64,000 nucleotides of DNA from Epithemia pelagica. Its lineage: Eukaryota > Protista > Bacillariophyta. A program made the position numbers and the translations under genes. This document shows positions 16,500-44,143 of this stretch, in pieces (the first letter of the stretch is position 1; every line of letters begins with the position of its first letter). The stretch is from contig OX337233.1 of the NCBI GenBank assembly GCA_946965045.2, positions 682,001-746,000 on the forward strand, in the 5' to 3' direction. The notes beneath the pieces were generated by a model. It did no database searches. It saw only the letters and a program-made list of their open reading frames with translations, and was not told the DNA's origin.

Positions 16500-19245
16500 T
16501 GCTTTATGGCATCACTGTCATTTGTACTAGTGGTCCCTGTTGCCGTTGGGCGAATGGCTTTTTCCATGGCATGCTTCAAGGATGGCGGTGCGACCTGTAG
16601 AGCCGTTTTTCCTTGATTATTTTGAGCATGGACCAAGGTATGGATCATTGGAGACTCCAATCTCATTGTGTTGTTGTCTTTGCGTTTGGCTTTGTCGTTG
16701 CTGGGACAAAACCAGGCCACCACACGTTGCACCAGTTTGTGCCGTACCGTGTCACGGACCGCTGCCGCGGTATCTTCTTCTTGTGGTTCCTGCAATTGCT
16801 GGACAAAGTGAACCCAGGCATGTTGTTGAGCTACGGCTTGGTTCGGCTGGGCCATGGAGACCAGAAGCGTGTCCAGATATCCATGGGCCAATTGACCCAA
16901 CACTTGTTGTCGTTGTTGTTGCTGGGATGTGGTCGTTCGTTTTGTTCTTGTTGTTGTCGACGCGGTACTGCTGCTGCCAGTCGAACCAACGTTGGTGGGC
17001 GTCGATTCCGTGCTGGTTCGGTTCTGGTTGTGGTTGTCCTTGCTGCTCCTTGTACTGGTTTTGACACGACTTTGGTTCTTGTTGTTGTTGTTCTTCTTGC
17101 TAGGTCGTGCGTCGTCTCGTTTGGGCAGCTTTTTCTGTGGTCCCGTGTCTCGTTTGGGTTGCTTAATATTCTTTGGTTGTACAGTCCTCTTGGTGGTCGT
17201 GTTGTCGTCGTCGGACGCGACGGCGGCTGCTGCTGGTCCTTGTCGTCGTCGTCATGGTTGTTGTCGTGGGGCACGACGGGATGGTAGTGGTACAACCATT
17301 GCAGCAAGTCCCACCAATACGACAATGATGACGACGACGACCGGGGATCCCGGGAGGATGCGGCGGCTGTTATTGTTGCTGTGGATGATGATGATGGTGG
17401 TGGTTGTTGATGCACGTATTGTTCCAAAACGAGATCCAAGGGCAATTGTCCATGAGCATCCTGCATACTCATGGCCGTGGTCTTCCTGCCACCACCATCA
17501 CGAGTCGTCGTCGGTGACTCGTCGTCCGCTCCGGCCAAACGTTGGATCCACTCCATGCGTGTCGTCGTGTCGTCGGTTCCCACTTCCATCCTGCTGCTCC
17601 ACCACAAGGCCGGATTGATGCAGGCATAATGCAAGGGAGTACGACCCCACACATCGGGGTGGGTGGTCCAGTCGTCCTTACTACGGGTGGTGGACCAGCC
17701 GCCGCACGCATGGGTTTGGGGGGATGCGCCCTGCAAGGCCCGAAAATGCAGGGGATTGCGTCCCGTGACGGGATCAATGGGCCACTGGTTGTTGTTGTCG
17801 TCCTTGTCATTCTTGTTGTCACGCTTACTACTACTACCATTCGGATTCCAGGGACACGTCCAGTGAGATTGCTGCTGCACGACAGAGTCCACGAGTTGTT
17901 GGTCGGAGGGTGGCCACCGTTCGGGACGAATTGTTGTTGTTGTGGTGGTGGTGGTGGTTTGGTGGACGAAGCGTTGATACAAAAAGTGCAAGGCCGTACA
18001 CTGATCCAAGACGTGGTGGCCTTCGAGTGTGACAACCGTGTTGTTGGTGGATAGAGTCAATAAGGACAGGGAATGACAGCCTTGCAAGGCTTGGGAGTGC
18101 AACGTCACTGATGTGGTGTTGGCTGCTGTTGGTCCATGGTCGGGTAGGACCAAGGACAAGAGGGAGGCACATCCGGCAAAGGCGGATGGACCAATCACAA
18201 ACGACGACGACGAGGATGGTGCAGTGTTGTGATTGTTGTTGGTGTTAGTGGTAGTAGTGGTCGTCGATTTTTGGGACGACGACGACAGGTCGATCGTGAG
18301 CAAGGCGCGACACTGGGCAAAGGTGGAGGCTGGAATGCCCCCCGTACGACAACACGACGGCCACCCGCGCACATGGACCAATCGCGTACACCCTTGAAAG
18401 AGGCCCGGTCCCACTTCCATCTCGGGCGGTGGTACAGTGGTGGCCGTCGCAAACGAGACGCCGGACAAGCGAGTACAGTGCGCCAAGGCCCGCGCTCCCA
18501 GGCGTGTCACGGTTGGTGGTAGAATCAAGGGACCCGTGCAGGCGGTACAATGCACAAAACATTCCTCGCCAATCTCGGTCAAATTGGGTGGCAATGTAAC
18601 GTTCACGAGGACGGTACAATGCGACAAGGCGTGCGACGGCAATTTGGTAATGGTACTAGTACTCTCGGACAGATCGACCCGCGTCAAGGTACTCTTGTGG
18701 TCCATGGACGACCGAGACGACCAGAAATCCTCCATGGAACAATAAGGAGGATTGGTGGAGGATCCAGTTTCGGAACCAAACGGAGGAGGATCATTGTGGG
18801 TGGAAGTGTTCTTGTCGTTGTGCTCTTGTTGTTGTTCATGTGGTTGTGGATCTGCTTGCAATGGTTGGTTCGTGGTGGTCGTAGTGGCGCCTGTCGTTGT
18901 TGCTTTGGCAGCACTGGGTAAGCATGACTCTTCCACTTACAACGATTCGGCCGACGACGAGGGAGGAACCAAGACCAAGGGTCGTGGAGCAATCAGACCG
19001 GCCAAGGCCGTTCGACGAGAGGGTTGTCGTCGGCGTTGTTGTTGTCGTGGTTGATTGGCAAACGTGGTGCTCATGACTGTCTTGCGGTGGTCCTTGTCGG
19101 CTGGAGTGTTTGCGGCTGGATTGTTTCTGGAAACTGTCTTGAGGTGGTCGTCTTGTCTTGATGAGGTCTTTGTCGTCTTAACTTTTGTTCCGTTTGTCGT
19201 ACCACTTGGTTGGGTGTTTCGAGATGCCGGAGACAATTGACGCAT
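16500..19245 (-). CDS. BspA-type leucine-rich-repeat (LRR_5) protein with ankyrin-like repeats; frameshifted near 16900
   Basis: Repeats such as LPPNLTEIGEECFVHC, LPPTVTRLGARALAHC and IGPSAFAGCASLLSLVLP. Ankyrin-like GRNPLH, GRTPLHYAC, GQLPLDL and NQGKTALQVA. Exact 5' exon structure unresolved. Confidence 0.72.
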
Positions 19246-19741
19246 ACATTGTGGAGAGTGGTTGGATCATGTGGATGGGCCACACAATCCACACAACGAG
19301 GATGACGACGACGACGACGACGACGAGCAGTGTCGTTCTTTGCTGTGCAACGATTCGTTCTCCGTGCGGCTTTCTGGAATGTGTGTACGAAGATTTTGTG
19401 AGGAAACCGAGAACCCCTTCGTTTCGGAGCGCGCGCGCCCGACCGAGAACCCCGAATGTCGTGGTCCCACAACCACAAGCGGGGCGAGTAGGAGTCCCGC
19501 GTGATCGAGCGCAATCTCGTTTCGTGGACCTCCGACTCCGACATGTCATCCAGTCCATTCTTCTCATCGCAAAAGTCTCATTCCTTGTGTGCTCTTACGA
19601 ATTGCATTCCATCGACTTATCAGTAGAGAGACGTACAAACCAACAACGGCCCGAGAGCCCGAGACTCGCACACGTTTTGTCCTAGGAAGAAAGCACAAAA
19701 GGTCATTGCACACAACAAACGCAAACAGACATCAAGAGATC

Positions 19742-21772
19742 ATGGCGGATCAGCAAGAGTCACCATTGGAAGCACGGCTTGAGAAGGCTCGCAACGACGA
19801 GTTGAGTCTAGAAGCACTCTCCGAGCTTTCCGATGCATTGGCAGATGCCGGTCGCTTTCGTGAGGCCTATGAAGTTTTGCAAAAGGAATTAGCTGCGTTG
19901 GAACAAGAAAGAGCTGCGTTGGAGCAACGGGCAGCTGCGGCGAAGCAAGAAAGAGCTGCGTTGGAGCAACGGGCAGCTGCGGCGAAGCAAGAGAGAGCTG
20001 CGTTGGAGCAAGAGAGAGCTGCGGCAAAAGCGTGGCTCCATGAACGCCGATTTGGCTTCCAAAAGGCCATTCAACATGTGTATTTTCGCAACCATGACGC
20101 AGCATTGCCAGAGTTGGCGTTGAACAGCAGCGTGGAACCAAGCATGGGACGTTTCAACGGGAGGAACATGAATCCGCAGAAGGCGTCCTACCTCGCTCAC
20201 ACCTTTTCCGTTAGTAATCTGTGGAACGACGACGACATGGTGGTACCCACGTACTTTATCCCCGCGCCTGGTGAAGACCGTGCCCTCATTTTTAGCGGTT
20301 TCAGTCCCCAACACTTTCCACTCAAGTATCACAATGAACTCGAAATTCTGGTTCATGTTCGTTTGCTCGTCGAGGATGCCATTGTCTGTATCGGCTGTCG
20401 GACACTACTCGATTTGTACATGGAGAGTTCCTTTTATGGTATGTCACCAGACATGGTCTTCCTCCGCCATGAGCGCACCCGTCAAATCGTCTTTGTGATT
20501 CAAGTCAAGTCTCCCAATCGACCGGGAACCGACGACAATGTGTTGGAAGATCTAGTGGTGGGCGGGCAACTCTGGTTGTATTTAATGTCCATGAAGCAAT
20601 CGGGTAACCCAAAACCAATGGGGGCCATTTGTACTTTTAATGCGCTACGACTGGTCTCCTTGGACTCCTTTGAGACGCACATGTTTGAAGATGCGAAACA
20701 AAAACTCAACACTACGACGGTAGATATATGGCCAGAGGAACAACCTGACATCAAGAAACAGGCATCAAGTCCGGATTCGAAGAAGCAGAGTGCATCGGAG
20801 AAAAGCAAAAAGTTGAGTGTCAATGATCCCCCTGATTCGTTTGACACACAAGTTTGCGATGGAGTAGAAGTCAATGTCTTTCGTCCTTTGTTGTATGGGA
20901 GCGAGGCTGTACAGGGCGGCAATGTGTTCCGCATGCTGTTGGTAGCATTGACGACAGCAATGTTGGAAAACGACCACCTAGACGCTTCTTGTGAAATGAT
21001 GACGGAGGTCCAGAAAGGCAATGACATTGGAAGCCGTCTCTTTGCCTTTGCCAAGCCAGGCATGCTAGGGTTTGCCAGGACACCCCCAAAACTTGTCGTG
21101 CAAGCAGAACATCCTCACACAGCGGAAAACTTTTTCATACTCGATATCTTTGGTCCAGAAACGCAAGGTGAAGTGCGATTGATTGTGAGCACGGCAGGAA
21201 TGCCTGCGGCCGTCAAGTTTTATCGCTTCAAGCCATCACGTTTGGCGACCCCCGATGAGCGAAAACAGGACAATGAAAGCCGATTCGAAGAGGTGGAGAA
21301 GGCTCGGGACAAGGAGTGGGACTTGTGGCAAATCTTGTATCACGATCGAGGGGCTCGAAAAATTACACTGGGAGGGTTTCCATGTTTGCTCATGCCCTAT
21401 GGAACTCAGATCCCCATGCAAGACCGAAGCGCATCCCTGAGCTATATCGAAAGCGAACTTGTCAGGTTATGCCAGAAAGGGTTTGCCTACCCAGAAACGG
21501 ACTTGGATTGGCACCATGTGTTCAAGGATATGCATGGAACGCTCTTTCTATCGAACCTAGGTTCTCTGGAACGAATACCAGATGAAGAGGACTGCTCGGA
21601 CACTGTGCAACAACAATTGCAACGCCTAAAGGTGGATGCAACGCCGGCGGATGCGGTAGCATCGTCCATTGAAACTGTTGCAGGGAGCAGTCCAACCAAG
21701 CGAAGCGCTCCCGGAGGTGAATCGACGCCTACACAGCGACTGAAATCCAATGAAACGACACAGATCTCGTAG
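19742..21772 (+). CDS. CR-effector-like protein, copy 1: coiled-coil header + PD-(D/E)xK REase-like domain + kinase-like domain, degenerate active sites
   Basis: SPDMVFL...FVIQVKSP (E to Q), AAVKFY, ETDLDWHHV, LSNLGS (DFG Asp to Asn). Confidence 0.75.
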   Translation: MADQQESPLEARLEKARNDELSLEALSELSDALADAGRFREAYEVLQKELAALEQERAALEQRAAAAKQERAALEQRAAAAKQERAALEQERAAAKAWLHERRFGFQKAIQHVYFRNHDAALPELALNSSVEPSMGRFNGRNMNPQKASYLAHTFSVSNLWNDDDMVVPTYFIPAPGEDRALIFSGFSPQHFPLKYHNELEILVHVRLLVEDAIVCIGCRTLLDLYMESSFYGMSPDMVFLRHERTRQIVFVIQVKSPNRPGTDDNVLEDLVVGGQLWLYLMSMKQSGNPKPMGAICTFNALRLVSLDSFETHMFEDAKQKLNTTTVDIWPEEQPDIKKQASSPDSKKQSASEKSKKLSVNDPPDSFDTQVCDGVEVNVFRPLLYGSEAVQGGNVFRMLLVALTTAMLENDHLDASCEMMTEVQKGNDIGSRLFAFAKPGMLGFARTPPKLVVQAEHPHTAENFFILDIFGPETQGEVRLIVSTAGMPAAVKFYRFKPSRLATPDERKQDNESRFEEVEKARDKEWDLWQILYHDRGARKITLGGFPCLLMPYGTQIPMQDRSASLSYIESELVRLCQKGFAYPETDLDWHHVFKDMHGTLFLSNLGSLERIPDEEDCSDTVQQQLQRLKVDATPADAVASSIETVAGSSPTKRSAPGGESTPTQRLKSNETTQIS

Positions 21773-22169
21773 GAGAATGGGACACACAGACCAAGCAGGA
21801 AAATGTGTTTTTGTCCCATTCTCCTGCTAAATCTGTGTCGTTTCATTGGATTTGGTTCGTTCTATGTTTAGAATACCGCCATCACTGGATGCAGCAACGA
21901 GTTTCCAATGTTCTTTCCTGCCGGGATATATACCGACTTTCATTTCTAGGAAGTTTCCGTCACTCTTCTTATAGCTCATTTCTTCAGCAAATGTCGTAGG
22001 TAGAAAAGGTTCATTCTAGTACAGTGAACTTGGGCGTTCCGTCACCACGGCAAATGTCACAAAAGACCGGTCTACGCTTTGGTGCCGCCAATAGTAAACA
22101 CTATGCCTGCTTTAGTTCCTGGATGTAGAAAAGTGGTACGATAATGACAGGTAGCATTGCCATCATCGT

Positions 22170-22600
22170 CCAGAGAAAATGTTTCTGGGGACAGTCCAAC
22201 CAAGCGAAGTGCTACCGGAGGTGAATCGACGCCAACACAGCGACTGAAATCCAATCAAACAACACAGGCTTTGTAGGAGAATGGGACGCACAGACTTAGC
22301 GGCAGATTGTGTTTGTTCCATTCTCCTGCTAAATCTCTGTCGTTTCATTCGATTTGGTCGGCTCACTGTTTACATCATCACCGTCACTTGATGCAACAAC
22401 GAGTTTCCAATGTTCGTTCCTTCCTGGATAGATACCGACTTTCATGGGTTCTATTTGTTGCTAGGAAGTTTCCGTCACTCTACTTGTAACTTATTTCTTC
22501 AGCAAATGTAGTAGGTACAAAAGGTTCATTCTAGTACAATCAACTTGGGCGTTCCGTCACCACTGCAAATGTACAAAAGCCCGGTCTACGCTTTGCCGAA
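22170..22600 (+). repeat. Tandem re-duplication of the 3' end and 3' flank of kinase copy 1
   Basis: CAGTCCAACCAAGCGAAG...GGAGGTGAATCGACGCC and the downstream flank (21690-22080) recur here; a further degenerate copy lies near 22670-22840. Confidence 0.75.
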
Positions 22601-22849
22601 GTCATCTTGCACTATGCTTACTTTAGTTCCTGGATATAGAAAAGTGGAACGACAATGACAGGTAACGAAGCGAAGCACTCCAGAGGAGATTTTTTCGAGG
22701 CCTTCACATTGACTGAAATCCGATAAAATAACACAGCTTCACCAGGACAATGTGCTTCTCTCTTTCTGCTGCTTAATCGGATTTGGTCAGCTCTATGTTT
22801 ACATTTCCACCATCACTGGATGCAACAACGACTTTCCGATATCAATAGT

Positions 22850-23200
22850 ACTACTAGTGGTCCCCTTTGATGTTTTGTGCTAATGATTTTTCCATGGCTT
22901 GTTTCAAGAATGGCGGTGCCACCTGGGGAGCCGTTTCTCCTTGGTGGCAGTATGAGGTCCACCAATGCGGTTCAATGACACAAGGCCTGCGACGGCAATT
23001 CCCGAATGACAATATCAACGGTTGGACTCGTCATGTTGAGGTCGTCGTGGGATCGGTTGTGGTCCATTCAAGGATTGGTTCCTTTTGTCCTCAACCAAAA
23101 TTGACGCATGCATTGTGGAGTGTGGTTTGATTTTGAATGGGCCACACAATTCAAACAAAGATGATGGTGATGACGACGACGACGGTGTCATTCTTAGCGA
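22850..23200 (-). pseudogene. Deletion remnant of the LRR/ankyrin gene (unit 2)
   Basis: Blocks matching 16525-16600 (TACTAGTGGTCCC...GGCGGTGC), about 18610-18650 and 19235-19330 are joined together. Confidence 0.7.
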
Positions 23201-23569
23201 TATGCAGGATCGTTCGTGTTTCGTGTCCGCTCTTTCTTGGTTCTTGGGGAAACAAATTTTGTGAGCAAAAAGAAATTGGAGTGCGCGCGCCCGATCGAGA
23301 ACCCCTAAAGTCGTGGTCCCATTATCACAAGCGGGAGTCAAGTACACGATCCATTCCCGGATCAACTCACGTAAATCGCAAATGAATCCTCGTCCATTCT
23401 TATCGCATCAAAGTCTCATTGCTTCTGTGTGCTCTTACGAATCGACTCATTATTCGAGAGGCGTACAAAACAAACAACGGCCCGAGAGCCCGAGACTCGC
23501 AGACGTTTTTCCTAGGAAGAAAGCATAAAAGGTCATTGCACAAAACAAGCAAACACACATCAAGAGATC

Positions 23570-25639
23570 ATGGCGGATCAGCAAGAGTCACCATTGGAAG
23601 CACGGCTTGAGAAGGCTCGCAACGACGAGTTGAGTCTAGAAGCACTCTCCGAGCTTTCCGATGCATTGGCAGATGCCGGTCGCTTTCGTGAGGCCTATGA
23701 AGTTTTGCAAAAGGAATTAGCTGCGTTGGAACAAGAAAGAGCTGCGTTGGAGCAACGGGCAGCTGCGGCGAAGCAAGAAAGAGCTGCGTTGGAGCAACGG
23801 GCAGCTGCGGCGAAGCAAGAGAGAGCTGCGTTGGAGCAACGGGAAGCTGCGTTGGAGCAAGAGAGAGCTGCGTTGGAGCAAGAGAGAGCTGCGGCAAAAG
23901 CGTGGCTCCATGAACGCCGATTTGGCTTCCAAAAGGCCATTCAACATGTGTATTTTCGCAACCATGACGCAGCATTGCCAGAGTTGGCGTTGAACAGCAG
24001 CGTGGAACCAAGCATGGGACGTTTCAACGGGAGGAACATGAATCCGCAGAAGGCGTCCTACCTCGCTCACACCATTTCCGTTAGTAATCTGTGGAACGAC
24101 GACGACATGGTGGTACCAACGTACTTTATCCCCGCGCCTGGTGAAGACCGTGCCCTCATTTTTAGTGGTTTCAATCCCCAACACTTTCCACTCAAGTATC
24201 ACAATGAACTCGAAGTTCTGGTTCATGTTCGTTTGCTCGTCGAGGATGCCATTGTCTGTATCGGCTGTCGGACACTACTCGATTTGTACATGGAGAGTTC
24301 CTTTTATGGTATGTCTCCAGACATGATCCTCCTCCGCCATGAGCGCACCCGTCAAATCGTCTTTGTGATTCAAGTCAAGTCTCCCAATCGACCGGGAACC
24401 GGCGACAATGTGTTGGAAGATCTAGTGGTGGGTGGACAACTCTGGTTGTACTTAATGTCCATGAAGCAATCGGGTGTCAAAAAACCAATGGGGGCCATTT
24501 GTACGTTTAATGCGCTACGACTGGTCTCCTTGGACTCCTTTGAGACGCACATGTTTGACGATGCGAAACAAAAACTCAAGACGACAACGGTAGATATATG
24601 GCCAAAGGAACAATCTGACAGGAAGAAACAGGCATCAAGTCCGGATTCGAAGAAGGAGATTGCATCGGAGAAAAGCAAGGAGTTGATTGTCAATGATCCC
24701 CCTGATTCGTTTAACACGCAAGTTTGCGATGGAGTAGAAGTAAATGTCTTGCATCCTTTGTTGTATGGGAGCGAGACTGTACAGGACGGCACTGTCTTCC
24801 GCATGCTGTTGCTAGCATTGACGACAGCAATGTTGGAAAACGACCAAGAAGGCGCTTCTTGTGAAATGATGACGGAGGTCCAGAAAGGCAATGACATTGG
24901 AAGCCGTCTCTTTGCCTTTGCCAAGCCAGACATGCTTGGGTTTGCCAGGGCACCCCCAAAACTTGTCGTGCAAGCAGAACATCCTCACACGGCGGAAAAC
25001 TTTTTCATACTCGATATCTTTGGTCCAGAAACGCAAGGTGAAGTGCGATTGATTGTGAGCACGGCAGGGATGCCTGCGGCCCTCAAGTTTTACCGCTTCA
25101 AGCCATCACGTTTGGCGACAGCCGATGAGCGAAAACAGGACAATGAAAGCCGATTCGAAGAGGTGGAGAAGGCTCGGGAGAAGGAGTGGGACTTGTGGCA
25201 AATTTTGTATCACGATCGAGGGGCTCGAAAAATTACACTGGGAGGGTTTCCATGTTTGCTCATGCCCTATGGAACTCAGATCCCCATGCAAGACCGAAGC
25301 GCATCCCTGAGCTATATCGAAAGCGAGCTTATCAGGTTTCGCCAGAAAGGGTTTTCCTACCCAGAAACGAACTTGGATTGGCACCATGTGTTCAAGGATA
25401 TGCATGGAACGCTCTTTTTATCGAACCTCGGTTCTCTGGAACCAGTACCAGATGGAGAGGACTGCTCGGACACTGTGCAACAACACTTGCAACGCCTGAA
25501 GGTGGATGCAACGCCGGCGGATGCGGTAGCATCGTCCATTGGAACTGTTGCGGGGAGCAGTCCAACCAAGCGAAGCGCTTCCGGAGGTGAATCGACGCCT
25601 ACCCAGCGTCTGAAATCCAATGAAACGACACAGATGTAA
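23570..25639 (+). CDS. CR-effector-like REase+kinase, copy 2 (pseudo-enzyme)
   Basis: Highly similar to copy 1 with one extra heptad repeat. IQVK, ETNLDWHHV (catalytic Asp to Asn), LSNLGS. Confidence 0.78.
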   Translation: MADQQESPLEARLEKARNDELSLEALSELSDALADAGRFREAYEVLQKELAALEQERAALEQRAAAAKQERAALEQRAAAAKQERAALEQREAALEQERAALEQERAAAKAWLHERRFGFQKAIQHVYFRNHDAALPELALNSSVEPSMGRFNGRNMNPQKASYLAHTISVSNLWNDDDMVVPTYFIPAPGEDRALIFSGFNPQHFPLKYHNELEVLVHVRLLVEDAIVCIGCRTLLDLYMESSFYGMSPDMILLRHERTRQIVFVIQVKSPNRPGTGDNVLEDLVVGGQLWLYLMSMKQSGVKKPMGAICTFNALRLVSLDSFETHMFDDAKQKLKTTTVDIWPKEQSDRKKQASSPDSKKEIASEKSKELIVNDPPDSFNTQVCDGVEVNVLHPLLYGSETVQDGTVFRMLLLALTTAMLENDQEGASCEMMTEVQKGNDIGSRLFAFAKPDMLGFARAPPKLVVQAEHPHTAENFFILDIFGPETQGEVRLIVSTAGMPAALKFYRFKPSRLATADERKQDNESRFEEVEKAREKEWDLWQILYHDRGARKITLGGFPCLLMPYGTQIPMQDRSASLSYIESELIRFRQKGFSYPETNLDWHHVFKDMHGTLFLSNLGSLEPVPDGEDCSDTVQQHLQRLKVDATPADAVASSIGTVAGSSPTKRSASGGESTPTQRLKSNETTQM

Positions 25640-26049
25640 CAGGAGAAACTCTGTGTTGTTTCATTGGATTTCAGTCGCGGTATCCGTGGAATGTCACCTT
25701 GTTGGAAAGTTTGTAGGTACTACGATTTGGATATCGTGGCTCGAGGCTTTGCCCATCATGAACGCTTATTTGCAACACATTCAATGTCAACCCTATTTCT
25801 CACCTTGTTCTTGCGTCGCTATCCACATGCGAAGCCAGGTTCCTGTCGGGAGGGTTTTTAATTCGAGAAGAGAAAAATGATTCGGTAATTCAGACTATAA
25901 ATGTGGTACCCACAGGTATTAACTAATCGAAAAAACATTCAATCTTGTGTGCAGGATCTCGCGAAATGACGTATTCCAAGTCCTAGGTTCGAAGGAGTGG
26001 GGTATTCATTGACTGGGACTTGTCCCTCTGCTGTTGCTTTTTCGTTTGT

Positions 26050-26150
26050 TGAAAGGAATTTTGTGAGCCAATCCACAAAAAAAGAACCCGTTCTTTTCGG
26101 AGCGCGCGCGCCCCATCCTACGTTTGTGGAAAGGTCGTGGTCCCACGTAA
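26050..26150 (+). promoter_or_regulatory. Copy of the conserved upstream module of the kinase units (GAGCGCGCGCGCCC...GTCGTGGTCCCA)
   Basis: Matches about 19395-19470 and 23260-23325, but here it precedes an unrelated gene. Confidence 0.45.
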
Positions 26151-26708
26151 ATCTTTATCTCTTTGAGACGCCCAAGACGTTTGGTCCTGATTTGATCCCG
26201 AACACTACCGAATGACGCATGGACACGAACGTGCAGCCGTGTCAGAAGGCAGATGCCCGGGGGTGTCATTGGAACCACTGACGTAGTAGACACGACACCA
26301 TCTTTGGTTGGTCGGGTTCCAATGACAGTTTGTCGCACAAGCTGTCTGCAGTTTCGGACAACATGTTGTATGGTCCCCATTCGGTACACAATGACCCACA
26401 GTCGTGTGTGGACGGCGCTGCAGTTGCACCGCACTGCCATTGTATTCCGGCCTGTTTGGCAGGAACGAACAAAGACGTACCACACAAACGCAGTCGTACC
26501 ACGGTGTCTCCACCAATCATCTCATCGTAGAGAGTCACACGACACAAAAAACACGCTCAGCTTCCTTTTTTTTGTCACGCTCGTTGCTTCCTTCGCCCTT
26601 TTGCATCTCACAAAACAGACAGCGTGTCAAACACAACCACAACAAACAAACCAAACCGTGTGTCTTTCTTGTCCTTGTTCCACAATATAACAACACAAAC
26701 CTCCGACC

Positions 26709-27302: not shown

Positions 27303-28849
27303 TTGCCGCATAGTTTCTAGTCATATTGTATAAATTGTACAAAGGTATCCTACATGGCCATTCGCTTTGGGACGCGTGAATCGCTGGTGCGTCGCTTCTA
27401 CGAGGATGGATCCGGGAACTCTTGGGCCTTTTTCGTCTACGAGTAAGATACAAATGACCCTGCACGAGGGCTTTTACGATTGCCCGTTGCACTCCCCGTT
27501 CGTGGAGTCCGTGACCGGAAAATTACATCTGCCGGCCATTGTCTCGAGAGAATGACCGAACATACCAGCCGCCGAATGAAGTTGGAACTTGGGGGTCCGA
27601 CCGGGAACGAGGCAATTGCAGTCTCATCCACGAAATGGATTCAGCGAGCCAGGCAATAACGTTCCAGATTCAAATAAGGTTTCAAACATATAAGCCAAGG
27701 AAAACAATTATAAGCCCTCCTTTCAAGGGCGTATCAAAGTGTTATTGGATATCTTCGAACCAACTGAGTTTTGGGGAGCGAGAAAGGTCCACGCTCCACG
27801 GCAGAGGCGGCGAGAATTCTTTCGCTCCACACCACACACCACACACCACACACACCCTCAACGAGAAGCATCCCTCCGTTTTGGGTTTGGGGTGTCGTCG
27901 TTCCACAACGTGGCCCCTTGTCCTTGTCAACCCAACTGTCTCACTCTCCATTGTCCATCCACAGCGTTCTTGATCCACGCTCCATTTGGTCGAACCGGAT
28001 CGATTTGGTTGTTTCTGGATTGCGGACTGATTGATCGAAACGGTTCACTCCAATCCACGTCCCTCCGCACACTCACGGGAACAACGACTCGAACAGTTTC
28101 ACGCTCTCACGTGGTGGAACAACAGCGTTCCACAAACGACCGGTCCCCTACTTTCTCACGTTCGAGTATCAGTGGGAACGCCTCCTTCCAAACCGTCTTG
28201 TCGAGTCGGAACATTACGTCCCCCCCAAAAAGCCTTGTGACAGCGACTCCCAAACGACAAGGATCGATTGTGGACCACAACTGACAACGCTCCAAGCCCG
28301 CAAATCATTCCAACCGAGACGATATCCCAATTGACAACAACAACACACTCAACAGGTAGGTTTCGAAAAAGGAGGACAGATCATGAGTTGCAGAATTGTT
28401 ATCGCGCTGCGACGGCAAGAAATTCTCTTATGGCGGAGAGAGCGTTTGGGAATATCCAAACGAATGAAGCGCCTGTTGACACGCAGCAAAATGGCCATGG
28501 GCGAATATAGTTGGGGCTAGAGGGTTGTTGTGGTTGTGGTTGTTTGGATTGTCATGAGTCGACCTGGCCTGGAGGACGTTCCATCCAACGATGGAACCCC
28601 AAATTTTGTGTGAATCGTGTGACGAGTGGGGACGAAAAATTTGTGGTCCCCAAAAATGTTGCTCACGCCAAAGTCTCTTCCCGTCGTTGTTGGTTTGTTC
28701 CAGTCTTGTTGTTGTTGTTGTCGTTTGTTCCGATTTCCGATACTCCGCTTCAGGACGAATTGGTTTCGTAACCAAAATTCTGGGACAGTTTCACAAACCC
28801 TTGGATTGCAACAATCACCAACCAACGCCATTGTGAAAAAAAAACGACC

Positions 28850-29704
28850 ATGGCACCGCAAGAACGCTACACGACAACCACACGGACGACGCGCACCCGG
28901 CGGCAACGGCCCCTGCTGCATGCGTCCTTTTCGGAATACGATGAGTCGAGTGATTCCTTTCAACCGGACGAACAAGACAAGGCCATGGTGGTGTGTACGC
29001 CCGCCAAGGAACCCACCTTTTTGCCTCGCACTACGACTGGCTTGTCGTTGGTGGAGTTGGCCCGGGCCGAAATTCAGGAATTGCGGCACCGCCAAGCCGT
29101 CCATGCTGCGCACTTGGTGTCGTCGTCGTCCTCTCAACCCCGTATTCCCCCTCCCTCCTATTTGGGTCGATTTCCGACGGCTTGTGCCGCCTTGGTCCAA
29201 AGCATGCCCGGCAATCACTGCTGTGTCGATTGTGGCGCGCGACACCCGACGTGGGCGGCGGTCAGTTATGGCGCTCTCTTGTGTTTGCACTGCAGTGGCC
29301 ATCATCGATCCCTCGGCGTGCGCGTGTCGTCCGTCTGTTCCCTCGACCTGGATCATGTCAGTGTCCAGCAAGTCCTGTCCTTGTTGGAAGGTGGCAATGA
29401 TCAATGGCGCGCCTTTTTGGAACGACACTTGTTGACCCCCGAAACGTTGCCGCCCCAATCGTCGTCGCGGTTGACGGCCGAAACCGTCGTTCGACTCCGG
29501 TACAAGACCAAGGCGGCCCTCTTTTATCGACAACAATTGCAATTGCATGTTCAAGGCATTTTGCAACACGAGGGACCCTATCAAGGACGACGACGACAAC
29601 CACAAGGACCACCACATGTGGAACCAAGTAGTAGTAGTGCTACGGCCCGTCCGTCACCCGAACGACGAACGCCTCCCGGTCGCTCGGTATCGCAACAGTG
29701 TTGA
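28850..29704 (+). CDS. ArfGAP-domain protein
   Basis: CVDCGARHPTWAAVSYGALLCLHCSGHHRSLG: CxxC-x16-CxxC zinc finger with the catalytic Arg; also GGNDQWRAFL and YKTKAALFYRQQL. Confidence 0.9.
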   Translation: MAPQERYTTTTRTTRTRRQRPLLHASFSEYDESSDSFQPDEQDKAMVVCTPAKEPTFLPRTTTGLSLVELARAEIQELRHRQAVHAAHLVSSSSSQPRIPPPSYLGRFPTACAALVQSMPGNHCCVDCGARHPTWAAVSYGALLCLHCSGHHRSLGVRVSSVCSLDLDHVSVQQVLSLLEGGNDQWRAFLERHLLTPETLPPQSSSRLTAETVVRLRYKTKAALFYRQQLQLHVQGILQHEGPYQGRRRQPQGPPHVEPSSSSATARPSPERRTPPGRSVSQQC

Positions 29705-32105
29705 GTGTGCCTGCTACAATTGTGTTGTCGTTGTTGTACACGTGTGATTCTTGTGATTGTGAATGTCATTTTGTGTGCTACCTTGGAATGAAAGAGTGTG
29801 TGTCCTGGAAGAGTGTTATAGGAGGGGAATATGCTACTACTAGAAACATAAAAGATAATACAAATGCTCCATCGTCTAGCCTGTAGTACGTTGTACGATG
29901 AAAGTCCGAAACTGGAACGCTTTCCATGTCAAGTTATGATAGCACAATCCTCTGGAACGAACGTTTGCGAATCATTCGCAAAACACGATTTGCGGGTAGT
30001 CGTTCGCTCCACAACAACAACAACAACAAGATCTATTTGTGCTTTCTTGGGATGGAGCAACTCCCTCTTGTGTGGGGCTCTTTCTTTGCATGTCTGGAGA
30101 AACGGTGGAACTAGTACGAGCTAGAGATCAGCGTCCCAGTATTCGCAGCTTTGTGGTAAGGAAGAGAAACACTCTAGCAGGCAGTGTTTGCGGAACGTAC
30201 CCTACCTACCCAAGTTCTCTCGTTTGCTCTTTCGATCATTCTATTATATCATGGATCTCACAGTGGAGTGACCTCTCCCCCCCCCCCCAAATACTAGGTA
30301 GGTAGAGAGGTAGGGGATAGGGATAGGGGGAAACTCGTGTATGACGCACGACCAGGGAACCAATTCCATCCTCTTCTGTCATCGTGTTGGTCTTGAGAAT
30401 CTCGTTCAATGGTACGAGTCCGTACTCGTAGAGTCTTACTCGTACTTGTACTTGTGTACTCGTACGAGTAGAAAAGAGTCATTGAGACATTCCAAGACAG
30501 AGAGTTGAACTTTTTTACTTATGCTGGTCATTGTCCCAATGGGACTACGAACGAGTACTCGTACGCACTACCATCCATCGCCAACATCGGTTCATGCAGA
30601 ATTTGGGGGTCTTCCTCTCACAAAATCTCTACATTAGGACCTCTCTCTCTCTCTCTCTCTCTCTCTTTGGGCGAGAAGCCATTATTTTGTATGGACGCTT
30701 CCGGGAATCGAAACGAGCAAAAAGTCGTGTAAATGATGGTTCCGAACCACCACGAATCGAGCTGCTCCTCGTGAGAATGTTACACACAATGCTGTATGGC
30801 TCCATCCTGGAATCCTAATCCTCCTTCTTCCATCCCAGTGGGCTCCGAATGATGGGTGGCATCCTTGAGTAGTACCGGAATGAACACCATGTTCTAGGGA
30901 GGCAACCATGCGTCCACGGAGAGGAGTGGGGAGATAGATATCTCCACATTTCCACCAGGATTCTCTCTACAAGTCCGTACTGCTTTTCTGGTGCATCCAC
31001 CCAACGTGGAAAGACCGCAACAAAACTGGACCGCCGTGAATGGAATCCATCGATGTAGGAGACACATTGGTGAGCGATTGGCTGTGATCGAAAACAACAA
31101 GGCCGTGGTGGAGGAATACATGTGATCAACAACCAGGAGGACAAGGAATCCATCGACCGCATGTGGAATGGAATGGGAACTACCTAGCTATGTACTAGGT
31201 TTGTTGGCTGGACGAACATGACATGATTGGGATTGCAATGATTCGGTAGTATCATCAACAGGAGGAAACCATGGCCCCTTTTCTATTGGACGAGGTATTC
31301 CATGGACGATCTATCTCGCGGTCCGTTGGTGCTGCGGTTCATCGTCTCGACCCATCACCTTGGAGGAGGAGATTCGCGCTCTTGTGCTCAGTCTTTCCAA
31401 GACTCCATCGGGCCGTTGGTGGGGAGTCGGACCACCATCTGGCGGCACGAGTTCGCTCGAACCCCTTCGTCGTGATCGCCGGCCGGAAACGAATCCGACA
31501 TGACTCGCAGATGTCGTCTTCTCTGGTATTCCTTAGGTTCGTCGGCTTGCCCGGCGCGGTACTGTTGGAGGGAGACTCTCGTCCACCTTGAACGTTTCGG
31601 ATTGGTCGGGACCTGACGTTGCAACGTCACCAGCTGTCACCCAAACACCTTTGTGTCGGTTTCTTACAAGAGTGTTCTTTGTAATAAGTATAATCCGTCT
31701 TGTTGGCTGAGGTCAGCTCCATCCGGTACTTGGATCTGCGCCACGTGGTGGAATGGACCAATGGGACGGGGGGTGGAACCATTGCCTCCAAGCGTTGGGG
31801 TGTTGGGGAACAAGGAAGATAGAGTATAGATATAAACTATACAACTATAGTGTTTTTTGTACTGTTCGGGTGCAACGTAGACCCCATGGCGTATTGTATG
31901 GTACGAGTGCGTGTGTGTGTGTTTGCACCAAAGCTACTACAACATTATGGCAGGTTTTACGATTGGCCCCACAAATTGGTTCCAACAAATTGATTGGTTT
32001 GATACCATTGCTCTCTTCTTGCAGTAGTATCCAGAGCAAAGAGCCTCTTTTTTGGATCATTGTATTGTCCCCATTCGTCGCTGAAAGCAACCAACGAGTG
32101 ACACC

Positions 32106-32924
32106 ATGGACTACATTACCAATACAATCTTGTCGTCTTCCGGCATGGAGGCTCCCTTTTGGATCAAGGCCCGGCACCAAGTCATGAAACAACGACTTGT
32201 CCAAGGCTCATCCAAGCACTGGAAGAATGAAGTGCAGGTTCTGCCCGCACTGCGAAACAGAACGACCAGCAATGAGTCATCCTCTTGTTTGTTGGACATT
32301 CCTCCCATTTCGTCCTTGGTCTTGGAGGATTTGCCCCCCTCGCCACGCTCGCCTCGAAAACGAGTGGTGAAGGACCGTACGGACGATCACACGTTGGAAA
32401 CGGTCAATTCGGACGAGGATGAATCCTCCCTTTCCTTTTCCAGTTCCTCCAACAATTTGTCGGTATCCTTTGCCGAACCCTTGGTCACGGCCGTGTGGTA
32501 TCGTCCCATGGTGGAAACGTTGGAGGAGAAGGACTCGTTGTTTTATGGGGAGGAGGATTATCACGCCTTTCGGCAAGACTTTTGCCGTGTCCAACGCGCC
32601 TTTTGGAGACGACGGCAACGACAGCAATTGCAGTCGCAACCACAGCAGCAACAACGGCGCGTGCAGTTTCCGCGCGACAGTGTCGTGACCCAGGTGCACG
32701 AATACACTGTGCCGTCACCACACAACAAGCACGACTTGTTTTATTCCGAACAAGATTTGGAGCGGTACGTAAAACACAATGAGAGTTTGTAGAACTTTCG
32801 TCATTAAGAGTCCTGACATGTCTTTTTCTTGGTTCGTTTCAGATTTTTGGACGACTTTGTCACTTCCTTGAACGGAGTGTTGGTTGTTTCCGAACCCGCA
32901 CAACCACAATCCTCGACTGCCTAG
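32106..32924 (+). CDS. Hypothetical protein with two VxF modules; predicted intron 32765-32842
   Basis: VSFAEPLVT...SLFYGEEDY and RVQFPRDSVVT...DLFYSEQDL. The GTACGT...TTTCAG intron gives an in-frame last exon FLDDFVTSL...*. Confidence 0.6.
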
Positions 32925-33576
32925 CCAGGGATTGTGGTTTGGGGCTGGAGCGCCGGGAGGCTGCGCCGCCACCAATTTTGAACCCACTTATTGTTGCTAT
33001 CTCCTCATGCGTGTGAATACGCATTCTCACTCGTGTGTCTGTCCTGTCCCATTAGTATAGTAGAGTATGAAACAATAACTTAACGCGCTAATACTATCAT
33101 TGTTTCCCTCGAACTACTGCTGTCATTGATGGATCCACCATGCATTTTGTACTAGATCTCAATAGTTATGAGAAACAGTTAGGTCGTTGGCATCCTACCT
33201 CTCTATCTAAGAGCTACATAGGTACAGATAGTGTGCCTAGAAAAGCATGCGGACAAGACAGTATTGGCGGCACGCGTTTGTTGGAGCGCTACAACCTGCC
33301 GAGCTTTTGTGGCATTTGCCATGGTGACGAAACGCCCAAGAAGTTCATTGTACTACTCCTAGAATGAACCTTTTGTACCTACTAGATTTACTGAAGAAAT
33401 AAGCTATTAGTAGAGTGACGGAAATCCTAGCAACCAATAGAACCTACTCCATAAAAGACGGTATATATCCAGCAAGGAAAGAACATTGGAAACTCGCATC
33501 CAGTGATGGTGGTAATGGTAACAAAGAACTGACCAAATCCTGTTCAGCAGCAGAAAGAGACAAACACATTCTCGTG

Positions 33577-35579
33577 CTAAATCTTTGTCGGATTACCGAA
33601 TTTCCGCCGCTGTTTAGGAGTCGATTTACCTCCTGGAGCGCTTCGCTTCGTTGGACTGGCCCGCGAAAGATTTGCCTCAACCCGCGTTCCATCCAGGGTC
33701 TCCCTCAGGTGGCGCATTTGTTGTTCCACAATCTTCGACCGGTCATGGCCATCTGGTATTAGTTCCAGAGAAGCTAAGTCTGATAGAAAGAGCTTTCCAT
33801 TTTGATCCTTCAAAACATGGCGCCAACGCAAGTCCGTTTTTTTGTAGGCAAGCCCTTTCTTGCTAAACTTGATAAGGTCGCGCTCAATGGACTTTAACGA
33901 TGTGCTTCGGTCTTCCATGGGGATCCGAGTTCCATATGGCATGAGTAAACATGGAAACCCTCCCAATTCCACTTCTCGAGCCCCTCGATCGCCATACAAG
34001 TCCTTCCAGAACTTCAACTCCTCATCACGATCCTTCCTCGCCGCTGCTATTCGGCTTTTATTTTCCTTTTCTCGGTCATCAGGTGTCGCCAAGCGCGATG
34101 GCTTAAAGTGGTAAAACTTGACAGCAGCAGGCAGCCCCCAAGAGCTAACAACCAATCGTACTTCGCCTTGCTTTCCCCTACCAACGGCATCGAGTACGTA
34201 AAAGTTTTTGGCTTTTTTGCCAGGATGTCCTTTTTTCACAAGGAAGTTTTTTTCTGTCCTTGAAAACCCAAGGCGGTCTGGCGTGGTGTAAGCGAACAGA
34301 CGGCTTCCGATGTTATCGCCTTCCTTGACTTCTGTGATCATGTCAGAAGAGTCTTGTTGGTCGTTGTCCAACATTGCTGTCGTCAATGCCAGCAACAGCA
34401 TGCGAAAGACATTGCCGCCCTTTACAGTCTCGCTCCCATACAAAAAAGCCTTGAACATCTTTCCTTTTACTTCCACGCCGAACGAACCAGCTGGATCGTC
34501 GTAATTAAACTCTTTGTTTTTTTTCGATGCTCTCTGTCGCTGGGGATCTGGACTTGTTGTTGACTGTTTCTTGTTGTCAGTTTGTTTCGCTTGCCACGTT
34601 CTCACCATTGTCCTGTTGAGCTCTTTTTTCGCATCTTCAAACTTGTGCGTATCAAAGGGGTCCAAGGAGACCAGTCGTAGCTCATTGAAAGTACAAATGG
34701 CACCCATTGGATAGGGTACGCCCATTTGTTTCATTGACATCAAATACAACCAGATCTGGCCAGCCACCAAGGGGTGTTGAAATACATTTTCCGCTTTTCC
34801 CGGTCGATTCGGAGATTTAACCTCAATGACAAAGACTATAAGACTGTTTTTGAGGATGAGAACAATGTCAGGAGTCACGCCATAAAATGAAAACTCCAAG
34901 GACGACTCAAGAAATCCATCACAGCCCATACATGCAATGGCATCCATCACCAGCGAATGAACATGAAGTTGAACTTCGATTTCATTGTTATACTTGAGTG
35001 GAAAGTGTTGGGGATTGAAACGACTTGGAATGAGGGCACGTTCTTCACCTTCCTTTGGGATGAAATAAGTTGGTACGACCATGTCGTCGTCGTTCAACAG
35101 ATTATCAAAGGAAAATTTTTACTGATGTATTGCGCTTCCTGCGAACCCATTCCCTTCAAGCGGTGACCTTCAATGCTTGGGTGAACACTGCTGTTCAAAG
35201 ACAACTCTGGCAATCTTGCGGCACCGTTGCGAAAATGCACATCTTTAATAAATGCCCCATATCTCTTGTCGTTGTTATCTTGCCTCAAATTCTTGTTCTC
35301 TTGCCTCAAATTCTTGTTATCTTGCCTCAAATTCTTGTTATCTTGCCTCAAATTCTTGTTATCTTGCCTCAACGCAGCTGTCTCTTGCTCCGCTGCAACT
35401 TTCCCTTGCTCCTCCGCAGTTTTCCAAGCCTGTTTTTCCTTTTCCGAAACTTCATAGGCCTCACGAAAGCGACCGGCATCTGCCAATGCATCGGAAAGCT
35501 CGGAGAGTGCTTCTCGACTCAACTTGTCGTTGCGAGCCTTCTCAAGCCGTGCTTCCAGTGACTCCTGCTGTTCCGCCAT
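33577..35579 (-). CDS. CR-effector-like REase+kinase, copy 3: intact catalytic motifs, one frameshift near 35112
   Basis: MAEQQESLEARLEKARND header, (LRQDNKN)n heptads, TPDIVL...FVIEVKSP, AAVKFY, TDLRWRHV, LSDLAS. Adding one T restores alignment to copies 1 and 2. Confidence 0.78.
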
Positions 35580-36004
35580 GATTCCTTCTGGGTGTGTTTG
35601 CTGTTTGCTTGTTGTGTGCAATTACCTTTTGTGCTGTCTTCGAGTCTCGGGCTCTCGGGCCGTGGTTTGGTTTGTTCGTCTCTCGAATGATACGTCGATG
35701 GAATGCAATTCGTAACAGAGCATACAAGGAATGATGAGAATGGACTGATGGGAGAGGATTTGCGATTTGCCATGTCGGAGGTGTCAAACGAAAAACGAGC
35801 CGGGAATCGGGAATGGATCGTGTACATCTCGAACTCGATCAAGTATAAACCGGTTTGCACCACAAGATCATACAACCCGAACAAAAAACTTCATAGGAGT
35901 AATTCATAACGTCATTCCAAACTGCTCATACGAGCACTCCAGTAGAAAAGGCTCGTTCGAGTCATATGATGATGGTTGGGCAGGTTACACTAATATAAAT
36001 GAAG

Positions 36005-36250
36005 CGTGAAGGGTGAGCCCATACTCACAAGTTACAGGGTTGGAGGCATGACTCAACATTAAAATAATCATCGCTGAGTATAAGCTCTATATACTTAACC
36101 GTTTGATCAACGCTCATTTTTAACCATTTGTACTTCTTATTTGATAGTACTTCCGATTTTGGTACAGCTGGTCATTCTGGATTTTCCCACCCCACACCCC
36201 AAGACTAACGTCCTACCCATCCCGTTCATACTGAATTCAGACGAATTGGT
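36005..36250. repeat. Interspersed ~250-bp repeat, inverted copy of 53783-54045
   Basis: Shared ATTCGTCTGA.TTCAGTATGAACGGG...CCAGCTGTACC...AACGGTTAA...CTCACCCTT. Absent at the equivalent place in units 1 and 2. Confidence 0.75.
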
Positions 36251-36293
36251 TCCCCAAGAAAACGAGCGGACACGAAACACGAACGATCCGTCG

Positions 36294-36352
<59 letters not shown>
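36294..36352 (+). repeat. (TCA)n microsatellite, about 19 units
   Basis: Direct reading; the paralogous positions in units 1 and 2 carry shorter (GAC/GAT)n runs. Confidence 0.9.
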
Positions 36353-36359
36353 TTTGTTG

Positions 36360-37510
36360 GAATGCGTCAATTTTGGTTGAGGACAAAAAGAACCAATCCT
36401 TGAATCGACAGCAACAACAAGACGATCCCACGACCTTAACAGGACGACTCCAACCGTTGATAGTATCCTTCGGGAATGGCCGTCGCAGGCCTTGTGTGTC
36501 ATGGAACCGCCCTAGTGGACCTCACAGTGCCACCCACTTGGACCAAGCAAGATTGACGAGGAATGGTTTGTGCCGTGCACGGCTTGGACGGGTCCCTTTG
36601 TTTGGTACTGCCACTGACCGTGACACACGGATAGGAGCTCTCGTGCCTTTTGCGCAGCAGTGTCCTCAGTCTCCTTTCTTTATGCCACGACCACGGCCGT
36701 TTCAGCAGAGAACCAACGGAAACTGGCAATTGCCATTGGATCTTGTTGTTCTAGAACACTACTTGCGCGCGCGCATCAACCACCACCACCACTCACCGCA
36801 GCAGCATCCTCCCAGGATCCACAGCGGTCGTCGTCATGGTCTTTTTGTTGGTGGGACTTGTGCCAATGCATGTGCCACTCTCATCCCGTCGTGCCCCAAG
36901 ACAAGAATGACAATGACAAGGACGACCGCAAGACCACAACCAAAAAAGCAACCAAACGACCACAAGACCACAACCAAAACAGCAACCAAAACGAGACGAT
37001 GCACGACCAAGCAACAACAACAATACGAAACAAACTCGCGCCAAAGCCAGTACAAGAAGCAGCAACAAGAACCGAACCAGCACGGAATGGACGTCCACAA
37101 AACATGGTTCTACCTAGAAGTACGACTTCTTCTACCGCATCTACACAAAGAAGAACCCCCCATCACAGCAACAGCAAAAACGACAACAACAAGTGTTGGG
37201 TAACTTGTGCCAGCACATGGATATCTGGAATCTGGACAAACTTGTTCTCTCCAGCATTACCCAGGACCAATGGTCGTTTTCGGATGCTCAGCAATTATAG
37301 GAACCACAAGAAGATGTCACAGCGCAACTGTGCAGGACAAGGTAATGAACTGCTGGTGCAACGTTTGGTGGCTTGGTGTTGTCCCAGCCATGACACTGAC
37401 AATGACACCAACAACACTGTGAGATTGGACATTAGAGATGGTCCATACCTTGGTCCATGTGCAAAATGATCAAGGAAAAACGGCTCTACAGGTGGCACCG
37501 CCGTCCTTGA
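36360..37510 (+). pseudogene. Degenerate LRR/ankyrin gene (unit 3)
   Basis: Pieces align to the 16500-19245 gene: the LPP...EE.FV.CTA.TGP LRR, SSQDPQRSSSWSFCWWDL, and LVQRLVAWCCPS...NDQGKTALQVAPPSLK. Multiple stops and deletions. Confidence 0.75.
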
Positions 37511-37599
37511 AACATTCTCAGTAAAAAACCAAATGATATCGGAAACTCGCTGTTGCATCCGGTGATGGTGGTACTGTAAACATATAGAGCTGACCAAAT

Positions 37600-38160
37600 C
37601 CGATGTAGCAGCAGAAAGAGACAAGCACACTCTCGTTCTATCCACCTTGAGGCGTTGCAGTTCTTGTTGCACAGTGTCCGAGCAGTCCTCTCCATCTGGT
37701 ATTCGCCTAGGTCCGATAAAAAGAGCTTTCCATTTAGATCCTTGAACACATGGTTCCAACTAAAGTCCGTTTCTGGGTAGGCAAACCCTTTCTGGCGAAA
37801 CCTGATAAGTTCGCTCTCCATGGACTTGAACGATGCCCCGTGGAATTTTTCGAGCGCCTGGATCGTGATAGACGATATTCCACAAGTCCCATTCCTTGTC
37901 CCGAGCCTTGGTCACCGCTTCGTTTCGGCTTTTGATTCTCCGCCTCTTGGTCATTGCCAGTGACCAAACGCAATGGCGGAAAGCGGTAAACCTTGGTGGC
38001 CACAGGCATTCCTGCCGTGCTCCCAATCAATCGTACTTTTCCTGGCGTTCCTGGACCAAAGCGATGGAGTATGACAAAGTGTTTGGCTGTGGGAACATGT
38101 TCTGCTTGTACAAGGAGGAGTTCTTGGCGGGTGTCGTGGCAAACCCCAGGCGGTCTGGCT
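37600..38160 (-). pseudogene. 3' fragment of a fourth REase+kinase copy
   Basis: LLVQAEHVPTAKHF...KVRLIGSTAGMPVATKVYRF, ARDKEWDLWNIVYHDPGARKI and ETDFSWNHVFKDLNGKLFLSDLG occur in shifting frames. Confidence 0.8.
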
Positions 38161-43838: not shown

Positions 43839-43839
43839 G

Positions 43840-44060: not shown

Positions 44061-44143
44061 GACGCACATGGGTCGCATATCAGTCGGATCGGGGCAGACG
44101 CAAAGAAACGAATTAGGTACCCCCTAGCGGGGGTGGCTTATAG

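Follow-up and report, generated by a model that had tools for sequence, protein, structure and literature searches.

Repeated head-to-head pairing of a leucine-rich-repeat gene with a nuclease-kinase gene in a diatom is probably the outcome of block duplication

In plants, paired immune receptors of the nucleotide-binding leucine-rich-repeat (NLR) type are encoded head to head as sensor and executor, as in RGA4/RGA5. A similar-looking arrangement is repeated in a 64,000-nt stretch of the genome of the diatom Epithemia pelagica (contig C6, positions 682001-746000, out of 60.5 Mb in 23 contigs; this whole stretch is termed the window). Here, a gene with LRR_5-type leucine-rich repeats (LRRs), or a remnant of one, faces a gene for a protein with both a nuclease fold and a kinase fold (termed the kinase below). 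We consider it probable (roughly three chances in four) that this repeated pair is a single ancestral pair that was copied in blocks, with the LRR gene as a passenger, and that the copies then decayed. As in the paired plant NLRs, the diatom genes are divergent, they share a short intergenic region, and one partner has a repeat-type recognition domain. Unlike in the plant pairs, neither gene encodes an NB-ARC or NACHT domain, the pairing is confined to one young clade, and it is the "sensor" that decays while the open reading frame (ORF) of the "executor" persists.

The kinase protein itself can be compared with two families of conflict proteins. The headers of the CR (Crinkler-type) effectors are reportedly either of the Ubl/LxLFLAK type or of an alternative alpha-helical type. 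In the "REase + kinase" class of CR proteins (for example, CRN8 of Phytophthora), toxicity is attributed to the restriction endonuclease (REase) and a regulatory role to the kinase (Zhang 2016, as summarised in PMC5289972). Like these effectors, the diatom protein has an REase-fold domain and then a kinase domain (a likeness of layout and fold), it has a short conserved N-terminal header before the enzymatic part, and it is encoded by multi-copy, fast-evolving genes in repeat-rich DNA. Unlike them, it has a header made of a 45-residue helix followed by a coiled coil, with no Ubl-type Crinkler header, its host is a free-living diatom, and two of its copies (1 and 2) lack key catalytic residues.

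The other family is SPOK, from Podospora and other ascomycetes. SPOK3 has a coiled coil with variable repeats, an HsdR-like PD-(D/E)xK nuclease with a QxxxY motif that is needed for killing, and a kinase that is needed for resistance (Vogan et al. 2019, PMC6660238). The diatom protein shares an N-terminal coiled coil that arises from a variable-length nucleotide repeat, a PD-(D/E)xK domain with the catalytic Lys and QxxxY (K270 and Q290-x3-Y294 in kinase 2, although copies 1 and 2 have Gln in place of the Glu of ExK), and a C-terminal ELK-like kinase. Both families evolve by duplication and diversification and include nuclease-dead variants. In contrast to SPOK proteins, the diatom protein comes from a different kingdom, has no detectable sequence match to them, and has no invariant Cys in the linker upstream of the kinase (alignments A1 and A6). 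Also, the catalytic Lys and QxxxY are ~20 residues apart in the diatom protein versus ~54 in SPOK3. By analogy, the diatom protein may work like the CR or SPOK families, but we do not claim that it belongs to either.

The repeated units and their descent

A reading of the window by its sequence alone had described three divergent pairs plus a fourth kinase fragment that lies tail-to-tail with the third pair. Repeat finding, self-BLAST, and tblastn placed every one of these elements where it had been reported. (The pieces of the LRR gene, namely an upstream frame and the main ORF, and the two frames of kinase 3 were each searched separately and were not joined.) The three divergent units, in each of which an LRR_5 gene or what is left of it faces a nuclease-kinase gene, and the fourth kinase fragment are confirmed to be homologous rather than chance matches. 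The features are:

16831-18936, minus strand: unit 1, main ORF of the LRR gene, a 701-amino-acid open frame with LRR_5 repeats, a poly-Thr linker, and a divergent ankyrin-like C-terminal part
18937-19245, minus strand: unit 1, possible 5' exon or leader of the LRR gene, 102 codons, low-complexity
19246-19741, no strand: unit 1, intergenic region, ~497 bp
19742-21772, plus strand: kinase 1, 676 amino acids, with header, coiled coil, REase fold, and DUF5898 kinase
20495-20509, 21149-21175, and 21548-21565, plus strand: kinase 1 motifs VIQVK, Gly-loop GPE, and LSNLGS, respectively (from the alignment)
21660-22664, plus strand: tandem repeats, 2 x ~502 bp, 83-91% identity, copies of the kinase 3' end (residues 654-688)
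22852-23109, minus strand: unit 2, LRR remnant, a ~260-bp stub in which a 3'-end piece is fused to a 5'-end piece and the entire repeat region is deleted
23570-25639, plus strand: kinase 2, 689 amino acids, full ORF
23570-23704, on to ~23920, 23921-24604, and 24752-25519, plus strand: kinase 2 header, coiled coil, REase, and kinase domains, respectively (from the alignment and models)
Within kinase 2, plus strand: motifs VIQVK (with Q268), Gly-loop GPE, TNLDWHHV, and LSNLGS (from the alignment)
33577-35579, minus strand: unit 3 (inverted), kinase 3, 56% amino-acid identity to kinase 2
35579-35112 and 35097-33577, minus strand: the N-terminal 169 codons of kinase 3 and a 506-codon frame, in two different frames
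Within kinase 3, minus strand: motifs VIEVK, GRGKQG, AAVKFY, TDLRWRHV, and LSDLAS; all catalytic motifs are retained
36362-37531, plus strand: unit 3, degraded LRR gene, ~1.2 kb, with weak matches to LRR residues 68-191 (30%) and 504-699 (41%) in two frames
37634-38163, minus strand: kinase fragment 4, part of the kinase domain only (residues ~465-648), 78-84% nucleotide identity to copies 1 and 2

Units 1 and 2 are the closest pair in the window: the block 19235-21777 is 90% identical to 23099-25647 at the nucleotide level, and the kinase 1 and kinase 2 proteins are 93% identical. By self-BLAST, positions 22852-22943 of the stub in unit 2 match 16525-16615 (82%) and positions 22943-23109 match 36534-36362 (84%). 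The ~502-bp repeats between the two units each consist of the last ~35 codons of the kinase plus its 3' flank, and a partial third repeat runs to ~22840; these are probably relics of repeated unequal crossing-over at the unit boundary. Fragment 4 is tail-to-tail with the LRR remnant of unit 3 (which has no Pfam match), and the order of fragment 4, LRR remnant 3, and kinase 3 mirrors the order of the 3' part of kinase 1, LRR stub 2, and kinase 2. It therefore appears that an already tandem array was duplicated in inverted orientation.

Genome-wide, there are 34 matches to the kinase family and about five detected LRR_5 loci, and the two co-occur only at the window units and at two more units on contig C5. 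Three of these LRR_5 loci lie at the units. The C5 units form a 4,348-bp tandem repeat, with LRR genes that are 94% identical (the second copy is cut at residue 370) and kinases that are 83-88% identical (cut at residues 505-525). They lie inside a ~20-kb collinear segmental duplicate that matches the window at 6.8-21.2 kb, unrelated genes included. No collinearity of C5 and C6 was found beyond this duplicate. Homeology of the whole chromosomes was also considered and was rejected, as the homology ends after ~20 kb. In a maximum-likelihood tree, kinase 3 is sister to the clade of kinase 1, kinase 2, and the C5 kinases (support of 100/100), and the orthologs from other diatoms fall outside. The header peptide occurs five times in the genome, solely at the three window units and the two C5 units, and so does an exact 22-mer from the intergenic region (19646-19667, ~75 bp upstream of the ATG; the further copies in the window are at 23477-23498 on the plus strand and 35642-35663 on the minus strand). 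Given the tree and these counts, all five units trace to one pair.

If the pairing were more than shared descent, then kinases that diverged earlier should have LRR neighbors as well. They do not: the neighbors of nine distant paralogs (26-30% identity; on C4, C1, and C7) are Methyltransf_7, FAD oxidoreductases, Tra1, PP2C, DDE_Tnp_4, Pkinase, and DUF6604 genes, and none of the nine is linked to LRR_5. (The sole nearby LRR gene is of the plant-type LRR_8 and lies downstream on the same strand.) Among the foreign orthologs, only P0006 has a neighborhood that can be read, and it faces Utp14 head-to-head; a scan of metagenomes for the locus gave two short contigs without usable upstream context. 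Thus, neither the header search nor the neighbors of these paralogs and the ortholog revealed an independent LRR linkage, and this is the outcome that the sequence-only reading itself had named as contradicting it.

As a control, we examined two paralogs on C4, L033 (C4:331500-341499) and L035 (312000-321999), which share a 5.4-kb block at 92.7% identity. This block contains a kinase and, head-to-head with it, an S-adenosylmethionine-dependent carboxyl methyltransferase that is unrelated to LRR genes, so the pattern of co-duplication is the same. A third C4 paralog faces the L033/L035 pair at C4:341574.

The 5' ends of the kinase genes have a history of their own. The sequence-only reading had proposed a shared intergenic module, and this holds for the kinase-proximal ~140 bp, which are conserved in all five units, but not for the LRR-proximal half of the region in unit 3, which cannot be aligned. 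The similarity continues into the gene: the header-coding sequences of copy 1 (19773-19892) and copy 3 (35436-35560) are 92-97% identical (96% over 125 nt) versus ~72% for the rest of the gene, and the synonymous divergence between these copies is 0.07 in the header (44 codons only) versus 0.47 in the rest. From these comparisons and the invariant 22-mer, we infer that gene conversion is the most likely reason why ~140 bp next to the promoter and ~125 nt of header-coding sequence have stayed nearly identical; very strong constraint is the other candidate. The homogenized 5' module of the diatom copies recalls the Crinkler genes, with their conserved headers and variable bodies.

The intergenic region between the LRR gene and the kinase also contains, in both C5 units, a ~960-bp element that resembles non-autonomous Harbinger/PIF transposons. 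The insertion at G000:C5:685011-685972 (L031:5012-5973) has perfect ~26-bp terminal inverted repeats and a TTA target duplication. The equivalent position in the window is ~19594, and a loose contig end at window 19594 (run X1) bears the same terminus as the C5 element.

The nuclease-kinase protein and the LRR gene

From its N-terminus, the kinase protein consists of a helical header of 45 residues, a coiled coil whose length varies, a nuclease domain with the PD-(D/E)xK fold, and a kinase domain of the DUF5898 type. By Pfam, only DUF5898 was found in these proteins (20.7-30.2 bits), and DUF5898 has been placed in the PKinase clan (PMC9758233). Alignment with orthologs and paralogs shows the motifs E..PD..(E)VK and QxxxY in the nuclease block and GxGxxG, AxK, the alpha-C Glu, DLRWRH, and DLG in the kinase block. 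The AlphaFold models of the two blocks have predicted local distance difference test (pLDDT) scores of 64 and 79. By Foldseek, the C-terminal block resembles kinases such as RIO2 and CaMKII (E of 5e-6, probability 1.00), and the model of the N-terminal block matches the nuclease domain of BpuSI (Z of 8.7) and HsdR 3H1T (Z of 5.7), with a list of matches that consists almost entirely of PD-(D/E)xK proteins. In the Atlas, the N-terminal block falls with BpuSI_N, HSDR_N, and PDDEXK_9 clusters; matches of the N-terminal block to a Mucoromycota cluster (TM of 0.53) and of the protein to an Oomycota kinase cluster (0.96) are leads only. A profile search of PDB sequences with the kinase protein returned only coiled-coil noise. 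Judging by the models, the combination of an REase fold and a kinase fold in one protein is correct, and the Crinkler-type effector layout that had been suggested from the translations is borne out by the fold matches, the Atlas matches, and the aligned motifs.

The protein belongs to a large family. Word-based protein searches find just 6-7 close relatives, and the whole family becomes visible through an exhaustive profile search: 1,236 representatives of 50%-identity clusters at E <= 1e-3, or 115 at E <= 1e-30. The nearest named relative is from a metagenome-assembled genome of Bacillariaceae. In a sample of 63 relatives, 59 have DUF5898, and the Ubl header of Crinklers was found by Pfam in none of them and in none of the window proteins. 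Two of the 10 relatives that we looked up are MMETSP transcripts (one from Nitzschia), so members of the family are expressed in diatoms. DUF5898 stands for a large, unnamed protist family of nuclease-kinases that is abundant in diatoms and in which motif-intact and motif-dead paralogs sit side by side. The coiled coil varies even between the closest copies: kinases 1 and 2 differ by one 14-residue repeat unit, and the direct-repeat spacing shifts from 3828 to 3870. Pfam models of the coiled-coil type also match.

The state of each catalytic position, with its frequency in the 63 relatives, is:

Nuclease Glu (ExK): E in 57/63 relatives; Q in copies 1 and 2; E in copy 3
Nuclease Lys (ExK): K in 62/63; K in copies 1 and 2; K in copy 3
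Second Gly of the Gly-loop: G in 62/63; E in copies 1 and 2; G in copy 3
VAIK Lys: K in 63/63; K in copies 1 and 2; K in copy 3
DFG-like Asp: D in 59/63; N in copies 1 and 2; D in copy 3
Catalytic-loop Asp: D in 46/63; D in copy 1 and N in copy 2; D in copy 3

Because near-invariant residues are lost at both active sites, kinases 1 and 2 are probably pseudo-enzymes. These active-site changes are not limited to this assembly, since the Q of the nuclease site recurs in the close relatives P0001 and P0002, and the N in place of the DFG-like Asp recurs in P0001 (P0002 does not include that region). In all comparisons among the kinases, the ratio of nonsynonymous to synonymous divergence (dN/dS) is 0.4-0.55. 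The frame of kinase 3 is broken where its alignment with copies 1 and 2 shows a 1-nt gap (near 35112, within an A5T4 run). That frameshift is absent from a second assembly (98.4% identical), which has a different break further on, and a consensus error could account for either break.

On the other side of the intergenic region, the LRR gene of unit 1 is a true BspA-type LRR_5 member (Pfam LRR_5 E of 7.9e-17 and 61.8 bits versus a gathering cut-off of 27.7; LRR_8 E of 3.2e-6). Against genome DNA, LRR_5 scores 40-46 bits. The sequence-only reading had called this gene "BspA-LRR/ankyrin", and the second half of that name is less secure: the Pfam Ank matches have E of 0.09-0.15, which is below the cut-off, and Atlas features match diatom ankyrin clusters at 0.94-0.95. 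The dN/dS of the LRR gene is 0.38. The 5' end of the gene model is unsettled because an in-frame stop (TAA at 18937-18939, inside GTAAGT) precedes the main ORF; a 27-nt GT..AG interval would preserve the frame. Units 2 and 3 share the start ATG of the LRR gene with unit 1 but reach a stop after 13 codons, and only unit 1 has the LRR gene complete as an open frame. A search of sequencing runs returned no RNA run. Four contig sets from one study, aligned to 16600-22500, gave fragmented unitigs that are uninformative on expression or splicing, with one weak joint from 17807 to 19034 (20 nt on one side).

Origin of the repeated pairing

We propose that the ancestral head-to-head pair, of an LRR_5/ankyrin-like gene with a gene for header, coiled coil, PD-(D/E)xK, and DUF5898, arose in this diatom lineage and went through four or more block duplications. 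One of these, inverted and older, would have produced fragment 4, LRR remnant 3, and kinase 3; a ~20-kb duplication between C6 and C5 and one tandem duplication on each of these contigs would account for the rest. After duplication, the LRR genes would have degraded, the C5 kinases would have been truncated, kinases 1 and 2 would have lost catalytic residues, and kinase 3 would have been frameshifted (in this assembly). If the pair was copied as a block, then its recurrence is a matter of identity by descent, with the LRR gene carried along as a passenger. By analogy with CR and SPOK proteins, the nuclease may provide a harmful activity and the kinase a built-in regulator or antidote; if this analogy holds, a separate LRR antidote gene would be unneeded. 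Birth-and-death evolution, as the sequence-only reading had it, fits the nested tandem, inverted, and interchromosomal duplications that are followed by decay.

Some observations weigh against block copying as the full explanation. An LRR gene, or what remains of one, lies next to all five kinases that have the header. Through four duplications the pair stayed head-to-head, and selection for co-regulation may have contributed to this. The single full LRR gene could serve every kinase copy in trans. The dN/dS values show that kinases 1 and 2 and the LRR gene are under a degree of constraint; they are not simply dead. Finally, what we know of foreign neighborhoods comes from one ortholog only. 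One alternative is that the LRR/ankyrin gene and the nuclease-kinase gene function together under shared regulation, either as sensor and executor or as antidote and toxin, and that selection keeps them head-to-head, with the extra units as products of birth and death. The short intergenic region (497 bp, which could be a bidirectional promoter), the concentration of LRR_5 loci at these units, and the dN/dS of the LRR gene (0.38) would fit such a pair, but we consider it very unlikely. The five units are not independent examples, as they come from one ancestral pair, and the linkage is seen in one young clade and in 0/9 paralogs and 0/1 ortholog, whereas paired immune genes should keep their head-to-head pairing across independent paralogs or orthologs. 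A two-gene toxin-antidote system should have an intact antidote wherever the toxin ORF is intact, yet the full ORF of kinase 2 is beside a 260-bp LRR stub and kinase 3 has kept its motifs beside a degraded LRR gene. Conversely, the best LRR genes adjoin kinases that are catalytically degenerate (copy 1) or truncated (C5). Only the kinase-proximal part of the intergenic region is conserved, the C5 intergenic regions contain the ~960-bp element, the LRR ORF of the second assembly is shorter, with another C-terminal tail and a Copia element after it, and an unrelated methyltransferase was co-duplicated in the same way on C4. So, neither the sensor-executor nor the toxin-antidote proposal is supported: the LRR gene decays while the kinase ORFs persist. 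The locus is a clean case of neighbors that mimic a recurrent functional cassette, and it cautions against over-reading repeated head-to-head units.

A different kind of explanation leaves the LRR gene out as irrelevant: the kinases could be SPOK-like selfish single-gene killer/antidote elements, whose own drive or mobility amplified the locus, with copies 1 and 2 as burnt-out drivers. This seems unlikely because the duplications are ordinary segmental blocks that took unrelated genes along and because the SPOK cysteine cluster is absent. On the other hand, the domain order of SPOK3 is shared (variable coiled coil, PD-(D/E)xK with the HsdR 3H1T match and QxxxY, ELK-like kinase), some paralogs have intact motifs and others dead ones, and the neighborhood is rich in transposable elements. 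Atlas features, which draw on Pfam 38.1, list a SPOK2_N cluster at 0.92 as a lead only, and neither a SPOK sequence match nor a Pfam SPOK match was found in the window proteins or the 63 relatives (weak evidence, as the copy of Pfam may hold no SPOK model). A broader version, that the diatom family is the protist counterpart of fungal SPOK, with a self-contained nuclease killer and kinase antidote and selfish spread, is by analogy conceivable, and we would call it unlikely. If it were true, then this locus would show a full life cycle (amplification, homogenization of the 5' ends, loss of killer and then antidote residues, and decay), and there would be single-gene meiotic or cell-cell killers in diatoms, whose sexual cycles allow laboratory crosses. 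More generally, if the resemblance to SPOK and Crinklers reflects function, diatoms would be a tractable system for nuclease/kinase conflict genes outside of fungi and oomycetes.

It is hardly credible that the repeated units are an artefact of assembly (collapsed or duplicated haplotigs). Some consensus errors are likely, as the homopolymer frameshifts differ between the assemblies, and the C5 and C6 units lie at similar distances from the contig ends. But the copies differ by 7-44% in protein, the homology of C5 and C6 ends after ~20 kb, and the second, independent assembly has the same order of LRR gene, kinase 1, kinase 2, and kinase 3; because it has this same layout, the units are not an assembly artefact. 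Block copying of one ancestral pair remains our preferred explanation.

Haplotype differences and surrounding DNA

In the second assembly, the ORF of the LRR gene is 568 amino acids, with a differing C-terminal tail, and is followed by a Copia element. The altered tail and the Copia element point to structural variation between haplotypes or strains. On contig ctg1292l (98% identical to the window), a Copia-type polyprotein with an RVT_2 domain (1710 amino acids; L045:1-2971) lies directly downstream of the LRR gene.

The ORFs of the window are long and mostly without interruption, and the flanking DNA is rich in repeats and transposons. High-copy repeats are dense at 40000-56000, where a ~714-bp element has at least 25 copies in the genome at 97-99% identity. 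Elements of ~2.3 kb (44162-46536, 47993-50335, and 53783-56000) have many copies at 92-98%, and their ORFs have no Pfam match. An ORF at 41007-41828 encodes a CAP/cysteine-rich secretory protein (E of 2.5e-7), and another at 59044-60462, a "Crinkler-like" gene, has a partial match to Pkinase (E of 1.4e-12).

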